This document shows, piece after piece, positions 848 through 33,704 of a stretch of DNA of 48,449 nucleotides; within the stretch, counting starts at the first letter, position 1; each line of letters begins with the position of its first letter. The position numbers were made by a program, and so were the translations under genes. This DNA comes from Klebsormidium nitens (Eukaryota; Plantae; Klebsormidiophyceae). The notes under the pieces were generated by a model that was given only the letters and a program-made list of their open reading frames with translations, made no database searches and had not been told where the DNA came from. The DNA lies in contig DF237586.1 of NCBI GenBank assembly GCA_000708835.1, positions 1-48,449 on the forward strand, read 5' to 3'.

Positions 848-2519
848 CCTGGCAGCGTCTTTGCTGAGCGGGCCATGGACTGGTGGTAGCTCTCAAGCTG
901 TCGTCTTGGAAAGCAGACAGGCGATCAGTGATGCTCTAGCTCAACAAACTATGAAGGATCAGCACTCCAGCCTTCTAAGACAGAGGGTGACAAGCGGCAA
1001 GCCAGTCGCTGCCCCGATGGCCCAGGCAGCGGTTAAAGAAGCAGCCAGTGACACCAAGTCCCCCGTGCGGTCAGAGGGGTACCTGAACGCTAAGGGGCAC
1101 AACGGTCAAATCAACCGCGTCTACTACTCTGTCCCCAAAGGCCAGGTTTGGGTCTTACCCTCACACCCTTTCTAAAGCTAGGTCTTTTGAAGGCTCTGAC
1201 CATCAAGAGATGGACATATGGGTGTCAGTGCAGCGCTAGGCAGAACAAGTGACGTGCAGGAAGTGTGTTCCAATCTGTGCTCGATGCCCAAACCTAGTTG
1301 AGAATGATGTCTGTGGTCAAATATGAATCATGCCGACTGTAGCCATTCCTGCGTCTTGGTACAAAGCCGGTTTCTAGAGTCTGACTTTCTCGAGCTTGTG
1401 GACAGGGACACTTTCAACTTATGACTCGCTCTGGACACTCCCTCAAAACTCCTAACTTGCCTAAACTGGTGCACACATCGTGATCGCCAGTCTGCTTGTA
1501 TGCTGACTTCATGTCGCATGTCCCTCTCGCAGGCTGCCACTCAGAACGCTCTGTACTTTGTTGGGGACTACGTTGACGGCGACGGAGACGCCCTGATTGA
1601 GCGGCTTAACACCGGGGAGGGCGTCGCGGCGACTCTCCTCCCAAAGTTAGACCCGGGGTCAAACCTGTTCATTGTGTACCCCTCCATGTACCAGGACCGC
1701 ATCTGGGCGTGCTACACCAGCATGCTCCCCGCCACTAGCCGCACCGGCGAACCCCTGGGCTTCGATGGGAAAGACCCCATGGCTGCGCGGCAGCTGGGGG
1801 CCCTGCTCCAGGACGCCCTCCGACAAATTTCGGCCTTCCCTGAGGGGACCCAAGGGGGGAACGAGGAAGCGTCTGCGAACAATGAAGCGGGCCGGTCAGC
1901 AGCCGGACTGCCGGTGGGACATACGGAGACGTCCGTTCCCGGCGTTTCGGCACCCTCCGCTTCCGCGTTGCCCACTTTCGTCATGGGCTTCTCCAAGGGT
2001 GGGGTCGTGCTGAACGAGATCCTTGCAGAGATAGCCGCTCTGGAGGACCGCCGGCCAGCAAGCGGCGCCAGTGGGCGAGAATCTAATACCGTGGGGAAGG
2101 TGCGCTCATATACGAGTTCGTCTGGAGGGGCGAAGTCCTCTGGGGAGGGTTTCAGCGGAGCGGAGGCCTTCCTCGAGAGCATCACCGAAGTACACTATGT
2201 CGACGTCGGGCTCATCTGTCCCGGCGCATACCTTACCGACCCGCAAAAGCTGAGCAACGTGGTGCGGAGGGGGGCAAGGAATCCTCTTACGATCGGCCTA
2301 CATGGAACCCCCCGGCAGTGGGAAGAGAGGCGGCGGCCATGGATAGGGGAGGAGAAGGACCGCATGCTGGCGACCCTGCGCGCAGAAGCAGCGGCTGCTG
2401 GTGCGAACAGTGGCTTCGAGGTCTTTGAGAGGGGCTACTGTGAAGGGGGAAAGGTTGGCATGAGAATGCACTTTGAGATCGTCGATCTGGCGGACTTTGG
2501 ACGGCCAGGACCGGCATAG
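666..2519 (+). CDS. UPF0565 / C2orf69-like alpha/beta-hydrolase-fold protein, 2 exons (666-1145, 1533-2519)
   Basis: Motifs NALYFVGD, GFSKGGVVLN (GxSxG elbow), HYVDVG, HGTPRQW and MHFE. Phase-0 intron CAG|gtttgg ... gctgac ... ctcgcag|GCT. The start could instead be ATG 950 or 1017. Confidence 0.85.
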
Positions 2520-3670
2520 AAAGATTCGGGATATTGTACAGGAAGCACTGAACTTTAGTGGAAGGATTGTGTTGTTCTGCTATTTCGCTGTAAGTCTGCT
2601 CTACACTCGAACTAGGTGAAGGAATAGTGCACCGCTTCTGAAAGGACTCCATGGTGGCCAATGAAGCGCACAATGTCCTTTTGTACAGGCGTGTACTCGA
2701 GGCCAGCGGGGTTGAAAGATTTGACATGCTCGTCAAAAGCTTCTTAATCAAATTACGGGCCAGACCAGGTAGTGGACAGTTGTGCTTGCATGCAACCGCG
2801 TGACATGCATACATAGTGCATATCTGATCGATATTATGCGACTGGTGCAGTAGGGCGCAATCAGCTGTTGCTTACAGACTATGCCCAAGGAGTTTTGGAT
2901 TCCGACATTCCCGTCATTACGATCGAGGCCGGATTAAGAGACCATCAAGCTTCATATGGACGGTCATGCTGCCATGGGCCGCATGCAGATTTGATTCGTC
3001 TATTGCCCGCATAATTGCCAAAATGTATATGTACGTGTGTACGTTTTGCATGATGTGTACTTAGTATGACATGACTATAATATACATCGGGCTAGTCTCA
3101 TTGCAAGCACGAAAGTTGCAAGTTCATGCAGGAAGCAGCATGTTATCTTTACAAGAAGTCAGGCCAGGCTGGGCCAGGCTCGGGTGGAATGTAGCACGGG
3201 ACCTTCTTTGGCATGGAATTGTTATCATATCAGCTAGCTGCAGCAAGCTCCGACAATCTGCATGAAACCGCAAATGCGGGTGTTACAGCCCTCGGCGCAG
3301 TCATAGTATTTGTATATGATCTCCAAGTCTACAAATCGACTAAGTATCATTCAAATTAGTTTGAAATACGTCGGCCCGTCATGTAGACCCGTTGGTCTTC
3401 ACACGAGTTCCTCCCAAAAATTTGGAAGGAAGGTATTCAACGGACACGAAATACTACGACACCGTGTCAGGACACAAAAGATTAGATCTCGTGCTCGTTT
3501 GCACGGACTCACGAATATTGCCTGCGGCCAACGAGGCTTTGACCAGTGACCGCAGTCAGCCAGCGTCACGAGTGGCGATTCATGAGAAACCGCCACCATT
3601 CCTTTTTTACCCCAACAACTTTCGACAGACAGGGCCAGCTATTTACTGACCAGAGAGCCTTCCGCATGGA

Positions 3671-6057
3671 CTACCGTTTCCGTTTTCTGCGCCTCGCAGG
3701 CTGCCCACTTGCGGCCGTCCCGACTGCATCCAATCCCTGGTCCGAGCAGCCAAAGAGATCGGGGCTCAGCTTGAGCTCCTGCTGCAGCGTGTACTTGAGC
3801 TCGATGGGAATCTCGTCCGCCAGCCGCTTCAGCAGCACCTTCCAATAGGCGCCCACTTTGATTTGCAACCCCTCCGCCCGTTCTAGCTCTGCCGTTGCAG
3901 GGGCCCCAAACCGCTGCCGTAACCGTGTCCTCGCCTTGCCCACGCTGTCCTGCAGGTAGTGCGAATTGCTCGTAAAGATCACTGTCCGCCCCTTCTCCTT
4001 CGCCCGCTCTACGTATGCCAGCCCGCTCGCTTCAAACCGCGCCAGGCCATCTTGCAGAGCTCTTCTCCGTTGCTGCACCATGGCCGAGTGCTCGAGCGGC
4101 AACCCCTCAAGCGCCGCAAGCCCTTCGGTCAGCGCGGCCGCCTTGACTTCTCTCACCAGCGCACAGCAGGTCAGGTGCGCCTTCCCCACCTCCTCCTGGA
4201 CCAGCTCTCGCAGTACAGCTTCCTCGCCCCCGACAGAGCCCCCCAAGCCGAGCAGCTTAATCACGATTTTGTCTCGGTAGCTCTGCTCATAGAACTGTGA
4301 AGCCCTGGCCTGGAGCCGCCCATAGAAATTCTCCAGCACCGTTGCGACGGCCGACGACGGCCTTTCGCCCCAGCACTCTTCCCAAGCCAGGGCGCCCCCT
4401 GCCTCGGAGGCTTGGAGGAACGAGAACGATTGCGGAGCTATTAAAGCAGAGGGAGCGCCGTTCGTCGTTTTGGAGACGCGCCGCCGTTTTGCAGTGCTCT
4501 GCCAAAGTAGAAGAAGCGTGCTTGATTTAGTTGCATCATTGCGTAAAATTGATCCCACAGGAGGTGGCGTTGATTCTGTCGAACGCACGGCGAAACATAA
4601 AAGATCTTGAAAATTGAATAAGCAGTATTAAGGAGAACACGCCGAGGACCAGAGGTGGGAGAAAACTGCACGGACGAGCATGACAAGTCCCCAGAGGTCC
4701 TGGTCCATGACATGGGGCAATCATCAGACAGCTACACAGGAATAGAAGGATACCAAGACGCACCTGGTGAGAGGCATTTTGGCCTGCCATAAGGACGCCA
4801 ATGTCAAACGCAGGGCCTGCTGCTGGAAGGGAAGCGGTGGGCGCAATACAGACTGCTGGGGCTTGCACTGGAGGGCTGTAAACGGGGATGGGGCTGAGCG
4901 AAGGAAGCACACTGAATGGAGCGGTGTAGTAAGGGTATGGAGCTGGTGTTAAGTAAGGATATGTATAAGCCGCCGGCTGGAAGTAGGTGACAGGGTTCAC
5001 AACCAGCGGACAGGGTGCTGCAGGAACCAGCGGCGGAGAGAGCAAGGGGGGAGCTGGGGCGACGGTAGGGGGGCTGTCTGTCAGGCCAAACTCAGCTAGA
5101 AGGCTTTGCGTCTGAACTGTGTCTAACTCAAATAGGAACTTTCCGTTGGTGTAATAGTTCGCCTGCAGGATTGGCCCAAACACCTCCTCGGTGAGAACAG
5201 GGCACTGCTCCCATAGCTGCACTTGGACCTGCAGCAAGCAAGCATAGAAGTATGGACATCAACATGGACAACGACGTTGCCTTCTCGAAGACCCGTGAAT
5301 TTGGGGGGCTGTCCCTGTAGAAGCAGATTGAAGAGAGGACCCCCTTAAAGCTTACAGACCATCTGTGCAAGTCTGTTCACCGAACTGAGCGACCGGAATG
5401 TGCAGTCTTTGAAGCACGTTACCAATGCGGCAAACAAAAGGCCTCCGGCTCTCTCACCTGAGCGGGAAACCGAGTTGCAGAGAAGTTGTTGCCACTCCAA
5501 GCAGTTCTGTCAATCTCAAGGCCACCATTGCTGGTCGCACGGAAAACCCCGCTCAAGGTTCGGCTTTGGTAGTTGAAAAGAAAGAGCGGCAGCCCCGGAG
5601 TTATAAGGCGGACATAACTATAGTGATTAGAGGGGAGACCTGAAGAAAAGGCACCACAATGTCAATGCCAGGGACTCTAGCGACCTTTGTCTTGACAGAG
5701 GCAACCTTTCTTTATGGAGGACACAGCATTGTTACATGGTATGCACAGCTTTGTCTATCTTGAGCACTCCTTGAACAACAGATAAAGTGTCGACTGGCCG
5801 TCTGGGTTGATTGTGGACAACCACCGTAGTCAGAACAAACACGTGAATATCAGACATGAGATGCTTTTTAACATGGCTTAGGCAGTCCACGAGACCGCAG
5901 ACCCACCGAAAAGGCCCTTGCGTAGACAATCTGACTCTGTAGAGTTGGTGCAGCCCAAGATCACTCCGGCAAGTTCGGTGCAGCTAAGTTTTCTGCTGGG
6001 GGGGACGAAAGCTTGATGCCTCAAATGAGGAGAAAGGCCATACTTCTTCGCCCCCAT
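3671..6057 (-). CDS. DCD-domain protein fused to a dynamin/Mx-like middle (stalk) + GED region; exons 6057-5907, 5639-5458, 5228-4764, 4498-3671; about 541 aa
   Basis: The DCD domain reads LAGVILGCTNSTESDCLRKGLFG|LPSNHYSYVRLITPGLPLFLFNYQSRTLSGVFRATSNGGLEIDRTAW...RFPAQ|V...FLFELD. The C-terminal exon has EAVLRELVQEEV, VIFTSNSHY and AYWKVLLKRLADEIPIELKY. All three introns are GT-AG with matching phases. Confidence 0.8.
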
Positions 6058-6913
6058 CCTCAACGAAACAATAACCAGCCTCGTGCCCTGATGGCAGAGG
6101 AACTCTTGAGCAACTTTCGCGCAGGCTCTGAGCTCCGTCCGTTTCTGGGTCCGAAGTCTGGAAAGTACCACAGCGCACGCTCCTTGCACAATCTGGCCCA
6201 CTTGCACAAAACAAATTAAAGCTTGCCACACCGGGCTGATCACTTGCAAAATCCGGGACGAGCACAGCGACACCAATCTACCTAAACGATCGCCATCCAC
6301 AGGAGGGATATTAGATCTGAAGCTGCGTAGTTTTAGCCCCTCCCCCTTGGCGAGCTCGCAGAAAGAGGTCACCGTTCCCAGGGAAACGATGACAATGGGC
6401 TCATGATATCCAGAAGCGCTAAGTTAGCTACCTCATCAATGACATCGAGTCATGCTCTGCCATGCTCTGCCTGCATGTGCACATGGCGATACCTATATCG
6501 AGCTGGCGGCCCGCCGGCGCGCCTTTGCCGAGGCGCGGCCGCGCCGTCCGGCACAAGGCGGCCGCGCGTCGCCTCCCGGCACAAGGCGGCCGCGCGTCGC
6601 CTCGGGCATGATGAACTTACTTATCGGAAAGGTCACGGTGCTCACTGCACGGCGCACGCACGCTTTCGAACAGGTCAGAATCGAAGGGATTGCCCAGGAC
6701 TGCCCAAATTTCGTGATCAGGTGCTCCGCATCTGGCTGCGTTGCCTTCACCTTGAACGATGTCACCAGTAGTCAACCTCTCTCATGGTTGAAGAAACGAC
6801 GAGGGTGACATTGAATCAACACGTTTGCTCAAGATTTCGGCTGACGCTGACAATCCCAAGAAAGCCACTAGGGGGCCACTAGTGGCAGTAGTTCCGCTTT
6901 TAGCTGAAGGGCA
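6058..6913. promoter_or_regulatory. Inferred bidirectional promoter/5' UTR region between the DCD-stalk gene and the rhodanese gene
   Basis: Head-to-head ATGs 856 bp apart, with a GC-rich core at about 6505-6605. Confidence 0.5.
6548..6603. repeat. Exact 28-bp tandem duplication (ccggcacaaggcggccgcgcgtcgcctc x2)
   Basis: Copies at 6548-6575 and 6576-6603 are identical. Confidence 0.95.
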
Positions 6914-11900: not shown

Positions 11901-12722
11901 GCACGGGCTGCTTCAACCGCAAAGTTGGCCCTTGCTGCCTACATAGAGGAGAGAGACATGGCTGAGCTTACCATGTGAGAGCAAACCAGGATGTTTGACT
12001 TTCATGACATTGTTGTGACAATGTTACAACCGTCCCAAGCTGCAGCTTGCTGGAAGAGTGGGGTAAATTTATAAAGACACTGAGCCTGATCCAGAAGGCT
12101 TTGATAGACACCGATCCACAGTATCTTCGAGCTTCTGTTAAGTAGACAAAGCTGGGGGTTCAGATTAAGAACGGAAGGGCTTGCTCATCTTAAGTGGTCG
12201 AGCAGAACTCACCTTGGAGTATTCAACACTGACCCCATCGTTGTGCATCAGGTCGTGCAACACGAAGCGCTGGGGTTGTCCGTCCAATTCAACAGACTGC
12301 CCGTCCGAGCACTGATCCCCAACTTCTACTGCATCTGTGCCCCCAGTGCTGGCACACACCCATCGAACCAACCTATACGAACTGCCACCAAACCTGGCTT
12401 TCTGTGAACCGAAGCGGCAAGCACCACCACTTGAAGACACAGCTGCTGGCAACTCAGACAGATCCGTCTTCTTCAAACCAGCACAGGCGCCAATGTGACC
12501 AAATGTCGTATTCTTTCCCATCTGGTGGAGCACCATGCTTCTGACCGATGTTACGGGCAACTTGGTATGGCTCTCCTTCAATAGCATTGCAGCTTCTCCA
12601 CCAATGCTTTCGCAACTTCCAAACGAGACTTGTGGGTGCTCCTGGAAACTGCTTGATTGCCTTGCAAACCCGCAATGGCCATGGCTCTGACGCAGCAGGC
12701 CCGCTGCCATAGCATTGGTCAT
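8963..12722 (-). CDS. SirB1 N-terminal / Transglut_core2 family protein (At4g19160-like) with a predicted plastid transit peptide, 8 exons
   Basis: LDLARAALEIAAEDDALVSHSVVPLPVESYLSRLD, DDPRESYLNGVLTRRVG, RLKRGIWTSVGAGDLRRALAASERL and LRDYGVLLFHCG, ending PW*. The start is ATG 12722 or 12710. Confidence 0.88.
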
Positions 12723-13072
12723 CAGCACCCTTTCACAACAGGCTCTCGAACCCTCACATTCGGCTTGATGGCCAAGTGCGAAATCCTGAACTGGCTTTGT
12801 CAACTCTCTCGATCAGGACTCTGCTCTAGCCTACTAGGTAGTACTAGTACTAGGACTGCATGGACATCCTTGTCTGGTGATCAAGAGGAAGAGCATGTGG
12901 GCACTTCCCCCTGCGCCATGCACGGACAAGGCATGTTCTCAGCTATTAACGAGAACGATAATAGATGAGCGCAGTGCGAAGCACTGCGAATTGATGAAGT
13001 GAGAGGAGAAAGTGTAGTAGGCAAAGTCGGCTCGTGCAGGCTCTCACAGATATAAAGCCGCGTTTCGGGTTA

Positions 13073-13100
13073 AGAGGTTCTCGTTAAGCAGAGAACCTCT
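13073..13100. repeat. Inverted repeat agaggttctc-N8-gagaacctct in the SirB1/LptG divergent promoter
   Basis: Perfect 10-bp arms at 13073-13082 and 13091-13100. A TATAAA lies at 13051-13056. Confidence 0.85.
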
Positions 13101-13371
13101 GTTTTCGACTAACTACGAACGTCGAAAACTATCAAATTTGCCGACTTTGTGCGCAGTGTTTGGTCACCTGGCAGTGGCAGTGGATGCTGGACGTTTTGAT
13201 ACTTCCTCTTGCATTGCATTCATCAGCGGGCATCAGCGCCCTCTAGCTTGTGCGGTGGTGACACTCCTGAGTCAGCACTGGGCGGATCAAGCAGTGTGCC
13301 CATGAGTGGGCCATGTTGAGCTGCATTTCTGAGAAGCGAAGAGCCTTAGAGGCTTCCACCAAGTCGATGCA

Positions 13372-31171: not shown

Positions 31172-33704
31172 ATGGAAGGACCACCAGCATCTCCTTCTCA
31201 ATCTTGTGGTGAAACGCCATCTTTTTACAGCCATGATGCAGTTGATAGCAGCTCAGCAAGTGAAGATGCCTCGGAATTTCAACAAGAACTCGTGCAATGG
31301 TTGCGCATCGACCACCTAGGAAGCAGCCTGCGGCGAAAGATCCTCAAGAAGACCGAAGTCATCATTTTGAAAGTGGACGTCATGGAGCTCATAAGCAGCT
31401 TTCCAATCTTAGCTGGCGAGATCATCCGGTGCCCTGAGGATGTCGGAGTCTCCATCATCAAACACATTGTCAATCACAATACGCAGGATCTAGCCATACA
31501 AGAAGTCCTTCTTCAATCGAGGATCCACATAAGATGGCAAGCAGTTCCGATACCCGTGTTCACGTCCGTTCAAGAGGTTACTGAGTGCAGCAGGGAGCCA
31601 TGCCCTCTGCCTGGGTACCCTGTACAATTTCTCGGTGTCGTATATGAAGTCTCTTCGCTTCAAAAAAGGACCTATGTTAGGCGAGTCCGCTGCCACGCAT
31701 GCGGGGCGGAGCATCTTATATACCAAGAGAACCCGGGAACACCACCCTGCAGCTGTGGGACTTCGTTCGAAGAGGACATTGCCTCCCGGGTCGAAGTTGC
31801 TTATCAGGTAAGACATTCATAAGAGAGCACACATGTTGGCTGTAAAGAAACTTTTGTCGTTTCTTGTTTGTGATGTTTGTTCCTTGCCAACAGTGTGACT
31901 CTCAATATCGGTTTCGACAATTCTTTGCGGTTGTTGTCCAAAAGGTAGCGGAATCTTTGCCTGCAGGAAGTACTCCTGCGGCCAGTCCCTACAATGAAGG
32001 ATCCTGAACGCAACTCATTCCAGGGAAGCATAAGAGCTGTTCTCCTGGAGGATCTTTGCTGCGAGGTCCGCCTTGGAAACTGTGTACTGCTCAAAGGGCA
32101 TGCAAGGAGCTTTTTTGACGCTTCATCCACTCTTCCCTTGGACGGCAAGCTGGCAGCATCGGCTTGTCTGAGTACAAACTGTGTCAAAAAGGTCAACGCT
32201 CTTTCCTTCTTCAACACACAAGTGCAAGATATCCCCCTTTCAGCATCTTTGTTGGATCAAGACAACATATCGCTTGATGCTTTGGCGCAAGCACTTCGTC
32301 CGGCAGGATACACGTCCATCTGGTCAACTGAAGTGTGTATTAGCTTGCTCCTTAGCCTCGTTTCCGTATGGAAAACAGAAGGTGAAAGCGAGGAGGATTC
32401 GCAAGAAGCATTGCTGGAAAGTTCGCAGACCAGGAAGAGCATCCACGTACTTCTGGCTGCTTCTGCATTTTGCAGTGCGGCTTCTCGTTTGCTGCTAGCG
32501 GCTGCAGTTCTCTCTCCGAGGTCAATCCGTTTTGACACAAAGAACAAGAACGTGATAGCAAGATCATCTGCGGTTGACGACAAGACGGGCGTACTTTCAG
32601 TCACAGCAGGAACAATGGCGCTGGCCAACGACGGCGTGTGCGTGGTTGACATCAGCAAAGGCAGCCTCCGGAAAGACGTGGTCGAACAACTGCGGCATTG
32701 CATGGACAAACAAGTTATGCCGGCCGCTGACAGACCCGAGCTGTCAGTCGCCACCCGTGGCTCTGTCTGGGCATTCTTCACCTCTGAAAGCAGCAAGAGG
32801 TCTCTTCTCAAAGACGGTTCCGCGTGTCTCTTTCAAGAGCCGAGTCTTGATCCCAGACTCTTGAGCAGTTTCGACATAGTGCATAGGCTTTCAGCATTCG
32901 AGGGCAGAGAAGCAGATCGGAGATCATCGGGGGAGCTTCTCGACAGCACGGAAGAACATAACGCACCTGAAGTTGCCGAGACTCTGAAAGTGCACCTGCA
33001 GAGAGCGGGACTGCTGCCAAGCCCTCGCGTCACCCGGGATGCAAGAGAATTGCTGCAGGCCTACTACATGCTGGTCCGTCGGTCGCAGTCTTTGGGCACT
33101 GAGAATGCTTACGTGTCCTTAGCAACGCTTGAAAGCTTGATGCGGGTCGCGAGCGCTAGCGCGAGGCTGTTTCTGCGAGTTGAGGTTCTGGAAATGCCGG
33201 ATGCTACCCTCGCGATCTTCATGCACGAAAGGTCCTTGGAGGCAAAGGTAAGACGCACGTTCCCTGCTATATGACAACTAACCAATAAAGGGTTATTAGC
33301 TGCAGCCACGTACCATGATGCTCTTGGTTTTCTTGCGCGCAAAACATTTGTTTGCAAAACTTATTCTGCTCAAGGGTCTGCATCTCCGCTGCAGTCTGCT
33401 CTTTCGATTCACGTACAGTATTGCCTTACGGAGATAATATGTCCTGTTACTAACTTCAGACTACAATTCTATGTGATGTATCCTGTTACTAAGGTCAGAC
33501 TACATTTCTGTGTGGCCCTACGTGCAGTTTGGGGAAAAGGTCATCAGCAGGACTTTCAAATCCCGGCAGCGTGCGGCTCTGGGTGGAGCTCTGTCCGGAC
33601 CACCGTCCAGCATGGCCGTCGACTTTGAGCAGGAGCTGATGGACTTCCACGACGACCTGGAAGACTACATGGCACCGTTGGCCCTGCACAGGCCTGAAGA
33701 ATGA
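31172..33704 (+). CDS. MCMDC2: MCM-family protein with degenerate ATPase motifs, MCMDC2-like; exons 31172-31807, 31967-33247, 33528-33704
   Basis: Zn finger CHAC..CSC, AGTMALANDGVCVVD, ARELLQAYY and TLESLMRVASASARLFLR. Walker A reads AASAFCSAAS, Walker B reads VVDISK, and the Arg finger reads LLSSFD. GSVWAF resembles MCMDC2 CSFWSF. Confidence 0.8.
33439..33514 (+). repeat. Imperfect 39-bp-period tandem duplication spanning the branch site of the last MCM intron
   Basis: tcctgttactaa occurs at 33442 and 33481, and cagactaca follows both copies. Confidence 0.85.

Follow-up and report, generated by a model that had tools for sequence, protein, structure and literature searches.

A Klebsormidium nitens protein that joins a DCD domain to a dynamin/Mx-type stalk lacking the GTPase

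Results

A spliced, expressed gene encodes a DCD domain and a stalk on one mRNA

We describe a gene of the streptophyte alga Klebsormidium nitens, KFL_006370020, whose product is almost certainly a fusion of a DCD domain with a dynamin/Mx-type stalk that lacks a GTPase. The gene lies on the minus strand at 6057-3671 of the window, that is, of the whole 48,449-nucleotide stretch of DNA that was analysed, and its four exons, separated by GT..AG introns, encode 541 aa (Table 1). The product is identical in sequence to GenBank GAQ90417.1 ("hypothetical protein"), with the exon translations at residues 1-50, 52-111, 112-266 and 267-541. The intron phases are 1, 0 and 0, and all acceptors end in CAG.

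The splice joints 4498/4764, 5228/5458 and 5639/5907 are exact in assembled RNA contigs from four runs belonging to four studies, with CT..AC ends on the plus strand. A preliminary description of this DNA had proposed four exons with canonical, phase-matched splice sites and one ORF of about 541 aa, a model that matches both GAQ90417.1 and the RNA splice joints, and had singled out the 4764/4498 junction for an RNA check. Spliced contigs cross this junction, one in each of the four runs (side 255), with zero depth within intron 3, which is covered by no RNA contig from the four studies. Since a single contig spans exon 2 to exon 4 plus the 3'UTR, the DCD domain and the tail are on one mRNA; rather than stopping after exon 3, as had also been considered, transcripts continue, with contigs linking exon 3 to exon 4. 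KFL_006370020 is a spliced, expressed Klebsormidium gene with one DCD-stalk product.

At the 3' end, other RNA contigs extend past the poly(A) site at 3467, to 3331-3382. Separately, one low-depth RNA contig retains intron 1 (5640..5906).

Table 1. Features of KFL_006370020 in window coordinates
Feature	Position	Strand	Remarks
5'UTR	6058..6400	-	RNA contigs reach and pass 6400; 4-codon uORF at 6296-6282
Exon 1, coding part	5907..6057	-	ATG at 6057; aa 1-50 and first base of codon 51; DCD starts at aa 30
Intron 1	5640..5906	-	267 nt, GTGGGT...CAG; skipped in RNA contigs of 4 runs
Exon 2	5458..5639	-	aa 51-111; DCD core; PF10539 2.3e-17, profile positions 23-79
Intron 2	5229..5457	-	229 nt, GTGAGA...CAG
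Exon 3	4764..5228	-	aa 112-266; DCD end (to aa 156, position 5094), then linker (5093-4764)
Intron 3	4499..4763	-	265 nt, GTGCGT...CAG; its splice joins DCD to stalk
Exon 4, coding part	3671..4498	-	aa 267-541 and stop codon
Basic motif KRRRVSK (aa 270-276), NLS-like	4469..4489	-	by eye from sequence
Dynamin/Mx-type stalk (aa ~315-511)	3764..4354	-	helices α1C, α2, α3, α4; second half of Dynamin_M and first half of GED
C-terminal basic cluster RRRKRKR (aa 535-541)	3674..3694	-	site where GED BSE helix would begin; protein end
3'UTR	3467..3670	-	to poly(A) site; one run, poly(T) loose end at 3467

The DCD domain is followed by a Pro/Tyr-rich linker and two basic motifs

In plants, DCD proteins have been linked to stress and to hypersensitive cell death. 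The DCD domain of KFL_006370020 (PF10539; residues 30-156) scores 135.3 bits against a cut-off of 27.8 (E 1.3e-39) and covers profile positions 1-124 of 126, collinearly exon by exon (positions 1-21 in exon 1, 23-79 in exon 2 and 80-124 in exon 3). A match across nearly the full profile, far above the gathering score, bears out the earlier view that the domain is complete. The linker that follows (residues 157-266) is disordered; of its 110 residues, 26 are Pro, 17 Ala and 8 Tyr, in agreement with its description as Pro/Tyr-rich. AKRRRVSK and the C-terminal RRRKRKR, both noted before, are present in the product, and KRRRVS and RKRKR-stop are kept in two relatives, L001 and L002, and thus in three taxa. 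These two conserved basic clusters, called NLS-like by eye only, suggest a nuclear site of action. The linker sequence YPYL had been put forward as an ALIX-type binding motif; this idea is weakened because L001 has YPSF at the same place, and we have dropped it.

The tail is related to the stalks of streptophyte DRP4/Mx-type dynamins

In a phmmer search of 1.84 billion representative proteins with the 275-aa tail encoded by exon 4, the credible distant matches are all dynamins (E 7.9e-15, 3.3e-13, 1.5e-9 and 2.6e-5). The best two are full-length Chara dynamins with Dynamin_N, Dynamin_M and GED, and the tail is also matched by moss and lycophyte DRP4/Mx-like proteins. The aligned part comprises the second half of the middle domain and the first half of GED; the conserved blocks are collinear and align without ambiguity, and the stalk strings quoted in the preliminary description fall in the best-conserved columns. 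Every streptophyte DRP4-like protein fetched matches the tail by itself, at 33-71 bits, and a protein-language-model search for look-alikes places it at 0.97 to GED/Dynamin_M clusters, with 201 of 256 features in common. The phmmer and look-alike searches uphold the proposal that the helical region is a dynamin stalk.

Curated profiles gave a different outcome. The preliminary description had named HMMER searches with PF10539, PF01031 and PF02212 as a check; PF10539 is matched at 135 bits, but PF01031 (Dynamin_M) and PF02212 (GED) have no match at E<=1, either with exon 4 or with the whole protein. Because these two profiles fail, the dynamin reading would have been wrongly dropped on that check. 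The tail alone likewise has no match in Pfam and, by phmmer against PDB sequences, a single chance match (E 2). A word-index search with the tail returned only two near-identical 222-aa ORFs, and one with residues 267-541 of GAQ90417.1 found no match, a result that says nothing on the absence of relatives. Another phmmer match, P0007 (543 aa, THBD-like, with seven repeated stretches), was judged spurious on grounds of low complexity and repeats.

All credible relatives of the tail come from one streptophyte subfamily. This subfamily includes the moss protein P0015, found among the tips of the DRP4 tree file from Langley et al. 2025 (PMC11789081); of the solved structures, Mx1 and Mx2 match P0015 best, in line with the earlier view that the helical region is closest to Mx/DRP4. 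The A1 alignment profile spans MxB end to end. In a stalk tree built without outgroup dynamins, a very long branch, of length about 3, separates the DCD-stalk clade from the DRP4 stalks of Chara and land plants. As judged by sequence comparison, the stalk was probably inherited from a streptophyte DRP4/Mx-type dynamin.

The stalk has lost the GTPase and its connections

The tail has the antiparallel helical bundle of middle-domain helices and a GED helix. Helices α1C, α2, α3 and α4 are kept, including the near-invariant AYWK..KRLADEIP helix. A dynamin G domain is present neither in the gene nor in any frame of the window or of the orthologous 18.5 kb locus L001, by tblastn with five DRP4-like proteins and a P-loop scan of all six frames; these searches confirm that gene and window hold no GTPase motif. 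Dynamin_N (PF00350) has no match on GAQ90417.1, and tblastn turned up no trace of either a G domain or a BSE helix within the introns, linker or 3'UTR. The BSE helices and helix α1N are missing from the gene and the window: the protein stops at RRRKRKR, level with the start of the BSE helix in its relatives, which run on for ~25 residues more. In this basic cluster, alignment column R273 is invariant with the dynamin 'KR'. The earlier assignment of the tail to the dynamin/Mx type stands, with the correction that the stalk is incomplete, having neither α1N nor the closing BSE helix. Its ancestor was a dynamin, of which the G domain, helix α1N and the two BSE connections are gone.

The L2 loop, which in dynamins takes part in higher-order assembly, has also changed. 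Its motif, R/H-G-V/I..L/F.P in dynamins, has become LGLGGSVGG, three residues are deleted, and L4 is a very short loop. Because L2 is degenerate with a deletion and α1N is missing, filaments or rings may not form.

The stalk is predicted to form a homodimer

AF2 models the tail with confidence, but from an alignment made mostly of true dynamins, so the fold match is not independent of sequence homology; from the single sequence the model is poor (pLDDT 47). A Foldseek search of the tail model against the PDB has a best E-value of 0.019, and its high-probability rows are dynamin, Drp1 and Mx stalks. A search of the ESM Atlas by shape was uninformative, with no row above TM 0.34 by query.

A homodimer through Mx interface-2 positions is predicted, with an ipSAE of 0.77 in three of three runs, where the best control has 0.01; the runs have at least 75% of contacts in common, and the partner pLDDT is at least 76. 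Of 30 proteins solved as pairs, 21 reached the mark used, against none of 23 solved as single chains (among eukaryotes, 17 of 29 and none of 30), although the score may merely reproduce known structures, because dynamin and Mx stalk dimers are solved. The predicted interface covers tail residues 168-178 and 221-239 and includes the positions aligned to the Met of MxB 'RMEQ' and the Tyr of 'IIQYF', which we take to be interface-2 residues (MxA M527/F602).

Both halves of the protein are under purifying selection

The relative L001 is 75% identical in DNA and keeps all four exons and the splice sites, and neither L001 nor L002 has a frameshift or stop. Estimates of ω indicate purifying selection on both halves (0.08-0.18): 0.08 for DCD exon 2 against L001, 0.18 and 0.145 for exon 4 against L001 and L002, respectively, and 0.135 for the stalk. 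The linker has 67% identity and an indel relative to L001. So far, the DCD-stalk combination has been seen in the genus Klebsormidium only.

Discussion

Dynamin-family stalks are the assembly engine of GTP-driven machines. To our knowledge, no natural protein consists of a dynamin stalk only with a different domain attached, and no other stalk-only dynamin fusion turned up in our searches. Because the GTPase is missing, the orphan stalk of KFL_006370020 cannot act as a mechano-enzyme; we propose that it is most likely a self-association module. Dimerisation of the stalk would use interface 2, the conserved criss-cross contact, and would bring together two or more DCD domains on flexible tethers, giving higher-avidity ligand binding; the two basic clusters would place this action in the nucleus. 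We consider this explanation as a whole, the DCD-stalk architecture together with its self-association mechanism, to be probable, if well short of the confidence we place in the architecture alone. The DCD ligand, the localisation and the biological role are inferred. The DCD domain has a PUA/EVE-like fold and is a predicted reader of modified bases in nucleic acids (PMC7641849); the literature searched yielded no measured DCD ligand.

Several known systems share parts of this architecture. In plant DRP4C and animal Mx proteins (PMC11789081), the stalk from α1C to α4 is homologous, the KRLADEIP helix is common to all, and the dimer predicted here uses Mx interface-2 positions. By contrast with DRP4C and Mx, the Klebsormidium protein is without G domain, BSE helices and α1N, has a very short L4 and a degenerate L2, and carries a DCD domain at its N-terminus instead; because the G domain, BSE and α1N are absent, no GTP hydrolysis or power stroke is possible. 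Plant DRP4A is likewise a lineage-specific truncation product of the DRP4 family (PMC11789081), but a reciprocal one, since DRP4A proteins are GTPase-only truncations whereas the Klebsormidium protein keeps the stalk, has no GTPase and carries a foreign domain fused to it. Among plant DCD proteins (NRP, B2, DCD-Kelch and ParB-DCD; Tenhaken et al. 2005, PMC1182354), an N-terminal DCD is found in subgroups III and IV, with the difference that the C-terminal partner here is a dynamin stalk and not Kelch repeats, ParB or an Asn-rich region. We found no description of a DCD domain paired with a dynamin in the literature searched, and a 2020 survey of DCD architectures makes no mention of dynamin (PMC7641849). 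That survey places DCD beside YTH and EVE. By analogy only, YTH-type readers combine a PUA-like reader with a disordered low-complexity segment that brings multivalency; in the Klebsormidium protein, multivalency would come from a folded dynamin stalk.

Rather than pairing with itself, the orphan stalk could join the alga's full-length DRP4/Mx-like dynamins, either capping them in a decoy or dominant-negative role or serving as an adaptor through which a DCD reader enters Mx-like oligomers. Indeed, the interface helix AYWKVLLKRLADEIPIELKY is nearly identical to AYWKIMHKRLADEIPIQIKF and AYWKVVQKRLADEIPLEIRF of true DRP4-like proteins, and plant DRP4 genes have rapid turnover and truncated paralogues such as DRP4A (PMC11789081). 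Nonetheless, we consider such hetero-assembly unlikely: the homodimer is confidently predicted, the DCD-stalk clade is separated from the Chara and land-plant DRP4 stalks by its very long branch (about 3), and no full-length Klebsormidium dynamin is among the HMMER matches, although library clustering could hide one.

A somewhat less likely alternative is a higher-order scaffold, in which Mx-like rings or filaments built through interfaces 1, 2 and 3, together with the linker, seed, independently of GTP, large nuclear DCD assemblies or condensates on modified nucleic acid. In favour of this, the stalk has its helices α1C to α4 in full and evolves under purifying selection, the isolated MxA stalk crystallises as an oligomer (3ljb, by entry title), and the linker is of low complexity and rich in Tyr and Pro. 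The degenerate L2 loop with its deletion, the absence of α1N and the very short L4 argue against such assemblies, and the in silico prediction covered the dimer only. It is highly improbable that the tail is an unrelated helical segment resembling a stalk, one of two merged genes or a decaying remnant, given E-values of 8e-15 and 3e-13 from a search of 1.84 billion proteins, the collinearity of the conserved blocks, the joining of exons 3 and 4 in spliced RNA contigs from four studies, and a stalk ω of 0.135 with no frameshift or stop in two relatives.

The DCD-stalk protein has consequences for two fields and for annotation. For work on Mx and DRP4, it shows that the stalk is reusable as a free-standing module. 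For work on DCD proteins, it offers a simple DCD protein, predicted to be a dimer, in an early-diverging streptophyte, which could be used to test whether DCD domains read modified bases and require multivalency. For annotation, because curated profiles miss this stalk completely, more orphan stalks may hide in other genomes. As a long shot, we also envisage Mx-like nuclear oligomers whose arrayed DCD domains recognise modified nucleic acid, for example of viruses or transposons, independently of a GTPase, and trigger restriction or cell death. If true, such a nuclear sensing assembly would connect, in an alga, the antiviral lineage of Mx/DRP4 with the DCD cell-death pathway of plants.

Structure, expression and conservation of the DCD-stalk gene

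The four-exon model proposed in the preliminary description is identical to the deposited annotation, and all four exon translations are found in GAQ90417.1 (P0011; "hypothetical protein KFL_006370020 [Klebsormidium nitens]", 541 aa; UniRef name "DCD domain-containing protein"). Reading the reverse complement of 6400-3400 places the ATG at 6057 on the minus strand, and the coding length of 1626 nt corresponds exactly to 541 codons plus a stop. Intron phases are 1, 0 and 0, with the split codon GGT at the exon 1/exon 2 joint encoding G51.

Coordinates of the DCD-stalk gene and of other open reading frames
Feature	Position	Strand	Detail
Upstream ORF	6282-6296	-	four codons, ATG GCG ATC GTT TAG, inside the 5'UTR
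Exon 1, coding	6057-5907	-	P0011 1-50
Intron 1	5640-5906	-	267 nt, donor GTGGGT, acceptor end CAG
Exon 2	5639-5458	-	P0011 52-111
Intron 2	5229-5457	-	229 nt, donor GTGAGA, acceptor end CAG
Exon 3	5228-4764	-	P0011 112-266
Intron 3	4499-4763	-	265 nt, donor GTGCGT, acceptor end CAG
Exon 4, coding	4498-3671	-	P0011 267-541
C2orf69-family ORF	1500-2516	+	single ORF, 339 aa, E 1.7e-9
MCM-like ORF	31994-33271	+	426 aa; weak matches, MCM P-loop E 9e-8, MCM lid E 2e-7
TAF8-like ORFs (on L001)	12102-13171	+	Bromo_TP, TAF8_C

We placed assembled contigs from four runs, each from a different study, on 3300-6400. The run records give the RNA label merely as a guess; spliced contigs and a poly(A) end are the expected output of RNA sequencing. 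All three splice joints occur at exactly the predicted positions in all four runs, with CT..AC ends on the plus strand (GT..AG on the gene strand). These include the 4764/4498 junction, for which the preliminary description had proposed a transcript check. Every run has one contig that spans this exon 3-exon 4 joint and continues into the 3'UTR; in two of the runs it extends over exon 2 as well (e.g. a 1816-nt contig, 3331-4498 / 4764-5226 / 5456-5640). Depth within intron 3 is zero in all four runs, no contig retains this intron, and the contigs over 3300-6400 give no sign of transcripts stopping after exon 3. A loose poly(T) end at 3467 in one run corresponds, on the strand of the gene, to a poly(A) tail, and the contigs cover roughly 350-400 nt of 5'UTR. 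Introns 1 and 2 are retained in low-depth contigs (intron 1, depth 5.6-13 versus 30-90 for the spliced form; intron 2, depth about 8).

An orthologous gene on a Logan contig from a related alga (L001) is 75% identical in DNA, with the same four exons in the same order, identical donors and the terminal CAG kept at all three acceptors. Amino-acid identity for exons 1-4 is 82%, 92%, 67% and 84%, and Nei-Gojobori ω against this relative is 0.18 for exon 1, 0.08 for exon 2 and 0.18 for exon 4 overall (0.135 for its stalk part); against a second relative (L002) ω for exon 4 is 0.145. The C2orf69-family ORF lies just downstream of the gene in convergent orientation and is also its neighbour on L001, where TAF8-like ORFs lie about 3.6 kb beyond the DCD-stalk gene; their counterpart would fall at or beyond the window start. 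Elsewhere in the window, the ORF with MCM matches putatively encodes all, or one exon, of a divergent MCM-like AAA+ protein.

A DCD domain joined to a dynamin-like stalk

PF10539 is the single profile match on P0011 (residues 30-156, 135.3 bits against a cut-off of 27.8, E 1.3e-39), and its positions 1-21, 23-79 and 80-124 are matched collinearly exon by exon. A low-complexity linker follows (157-266; 26 Pro, 17 Ala and 8 Tyr in 110 residues). The YPYL motif singled out in the preliminary description as possibly ALIX-binding does not persist: it reads YPSF in L001, and the linker also carries an indel relative to L001. KRRRVS and RKRKR-stop, from the two NLS-like motifs, are conserved in all three taxa.

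The preliminary description proposed a search with the dynamin profiles PF01031 and PF02212, but the 275-aa exon-4 product (the tail) has no Pfam match at E≤1, nor did a PDB sequence search give a meaningful match. A word-index search yielded two ORFs of 222 aa and nothing else, with identities of 93% and 86%. A language-model look-alike search ranked GED/Dynamin_M clusters first (0.97, 201 of 256 features in common), and because the stalk claim rested on this result, we ran an exhaustive HMMER search against 1.84 billion representatives. Besides P0011's own cluster, the six matches include two Chara braunii proteins (E 7.9e-15, query 57-243 on target 403-588; E 3.3e-13, query 51-245 on target 412-605), a 179-aa protein (E 1.5e-9) and a 671-aa protein (E 2.6e-5); the sixth, a repeat protein, we regard as spurious. 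According to Pfam, both Chara matches and the 671-aa protein contain Dynamin_N, Dynamin_M and GED, and the 179-aa match is a GED fragment. The aligned stretch runs from mid-Dynamin_M to the first half of GED, and the stalk strings quoted in the preliminary description lie in its best-conserved blocks: RELVQEEVGK in the tail versus RRLVREEVDK in dynamins, TVIFTSNSHYL versus TIIFTTNDYYL, and AYWKVLLKRLADEIPIELKY versus AYWKIMHKRLADEIPIQIKF and AYWKVVQKRLADEIPLEIRF. Relatives fetched for the 671-aa protein include dynamins of about 660 aa from mosses (Ceratodon, Physcomitrium) and a lycophyte (Diphasiastrum); the tail alone matches every one of these, at 33-71 bits. These alignments indicate that the homology to dynamins is real, though curated profiles miss it.

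An AlphaFold2 model of P0011:305-541 from a 23-row alignment (mean pLDDT 79.4, pTM 0.75) has helices at 12-32, 34-46, 52-93, 97-134, 141-159 and 165-205, with the last 28 residues disordered. Foldseek E-values were weak (best 0.019), and the high-probability rows were Drp1, dynamin-1 and the MxA and MxB stalks. Since true dynamins make up most of the alignment and a model from the single sequence was of poor quality, the fold match confirms the homology and is not independent of it.

Plant DRP4 belongs to the Mx-like lineage, in which DRP4A proteins are GTPase-bearing truncations (Langley et al., 2025, PMC11789081). Dataset S14 of that study, the tree behind its DRP4A/DRP4C figure, includes the Ceratodon dynamin KC19_9G097200 among its tips. 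Among solved structures this protein matches Mx1 (236 bits) and Mx2 best and dynamin-1 less well (196 bits), and a profile built from the tail and its first matches spans MxB chain positions 385-610. Together, these observations support the Mx/DRP4 affinity suggested initially, although our own stalk tree has no outgroups. That tree resolves three groups, namely the Klebsormidium DCD-stalks on a very long stem, Chara, and land plants.

Two side observations concern Chara braunii proteins. GBG64786.1 (1478 aa) has two Dynamin_N/Dynamin_M stretches and two complete dynamin stalk units (400-640, 1141-1388), which reflect a tandem dynamin or, alternatively, adjoining genes that the model merges. 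In GBG59145.1, the G domain, middle domain and GED of a DRP4-like dynamin precede a complete TatD DNase domain (799-1102, E 3.6e-58); this arrangement may be a genuine fusion or stem from a gene model that merges two genes.

Neither a G domain nor the first half of a middle domain occurs in the gene, elsewhere in the 48 kb window or at the orthologous locus (18.5 kb), and a six-frame scan found no P-loop; matches to DRP4-like proteins are limited to 4348-3773. The first residue of the model is equivalent to dynamin residue 337, and it therefore lacks α1N. RRRKRKR ends P0011 at the alignment column where the last GED helix (BSE helix) of its relatives starts, and the relatives run about 25 residues further. 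In the L2 loop, LGLGGSVGG and a 3-residue deletion replace the relatives' R/H-G-V..L/F.P.

Novelty and possible function

In the literature collection searched, we found no paper pairing a DCD domain with dynamin (the sole co-occurrence of the terms concerns dCMP deaminase), and no mention of such a protein in surveys of DCD architectures (PMC7641849, PMC1182354) or of Mx/DRP4 evolution (PMC11789081). The gene was deposited but unnamed, with a tail invisible to Pfam. The DCD-stalk is a new architecture that combines two known modules and has so far been seen in just three Klebsormidium-type sequences. Bell, Wolf and Koonin place DCD among PUA/EVE-like readers of modified bases (PMC7641849); we found no measured DCD ligand in the literature.

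Lacking a GTPase, the stalk cannot be a motor. Self-assembly is the best-documented property of dynamin stalks, and a GTPase-less stalk would retain it. All three runs of a two-copy prediction gave an ipSAE of 0.77, whereas the highest of three controls scored 0.01. This passes a mark that 21 of 30 proteins solved as pairs attain, against none of 23 solved as single chains (17 of 29 and none of 30 for eukaryotes), although the tool warns that such a pass may reflect memory of solved relatives. At least 75% of contacts were common between runs, with partner pLDDT of at least 76. The predicted symmetric interface comprises tail residues 168-178 and 221-239 (P0011 434-444 and 487-505), and includes the positions that align in MxB with Met in 'RMEQ' and Tyr in 'IIQYF', the interface-2 residues of Mx proteins (MxA M527/F602, MxB M574/Y651).

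The main alternative is that the stalk co-assembles with full-length DRP4/Mx-like proteins, which is plausible because its interface helix is near-identical to theirs. Our best reading is that P0011 would form a dimer, perhaps a larger assembly and perhaps in the nucleus, that displays DCD domains on flexible linkers. Such display through the stalk would increase avidity for the DCD ligand.
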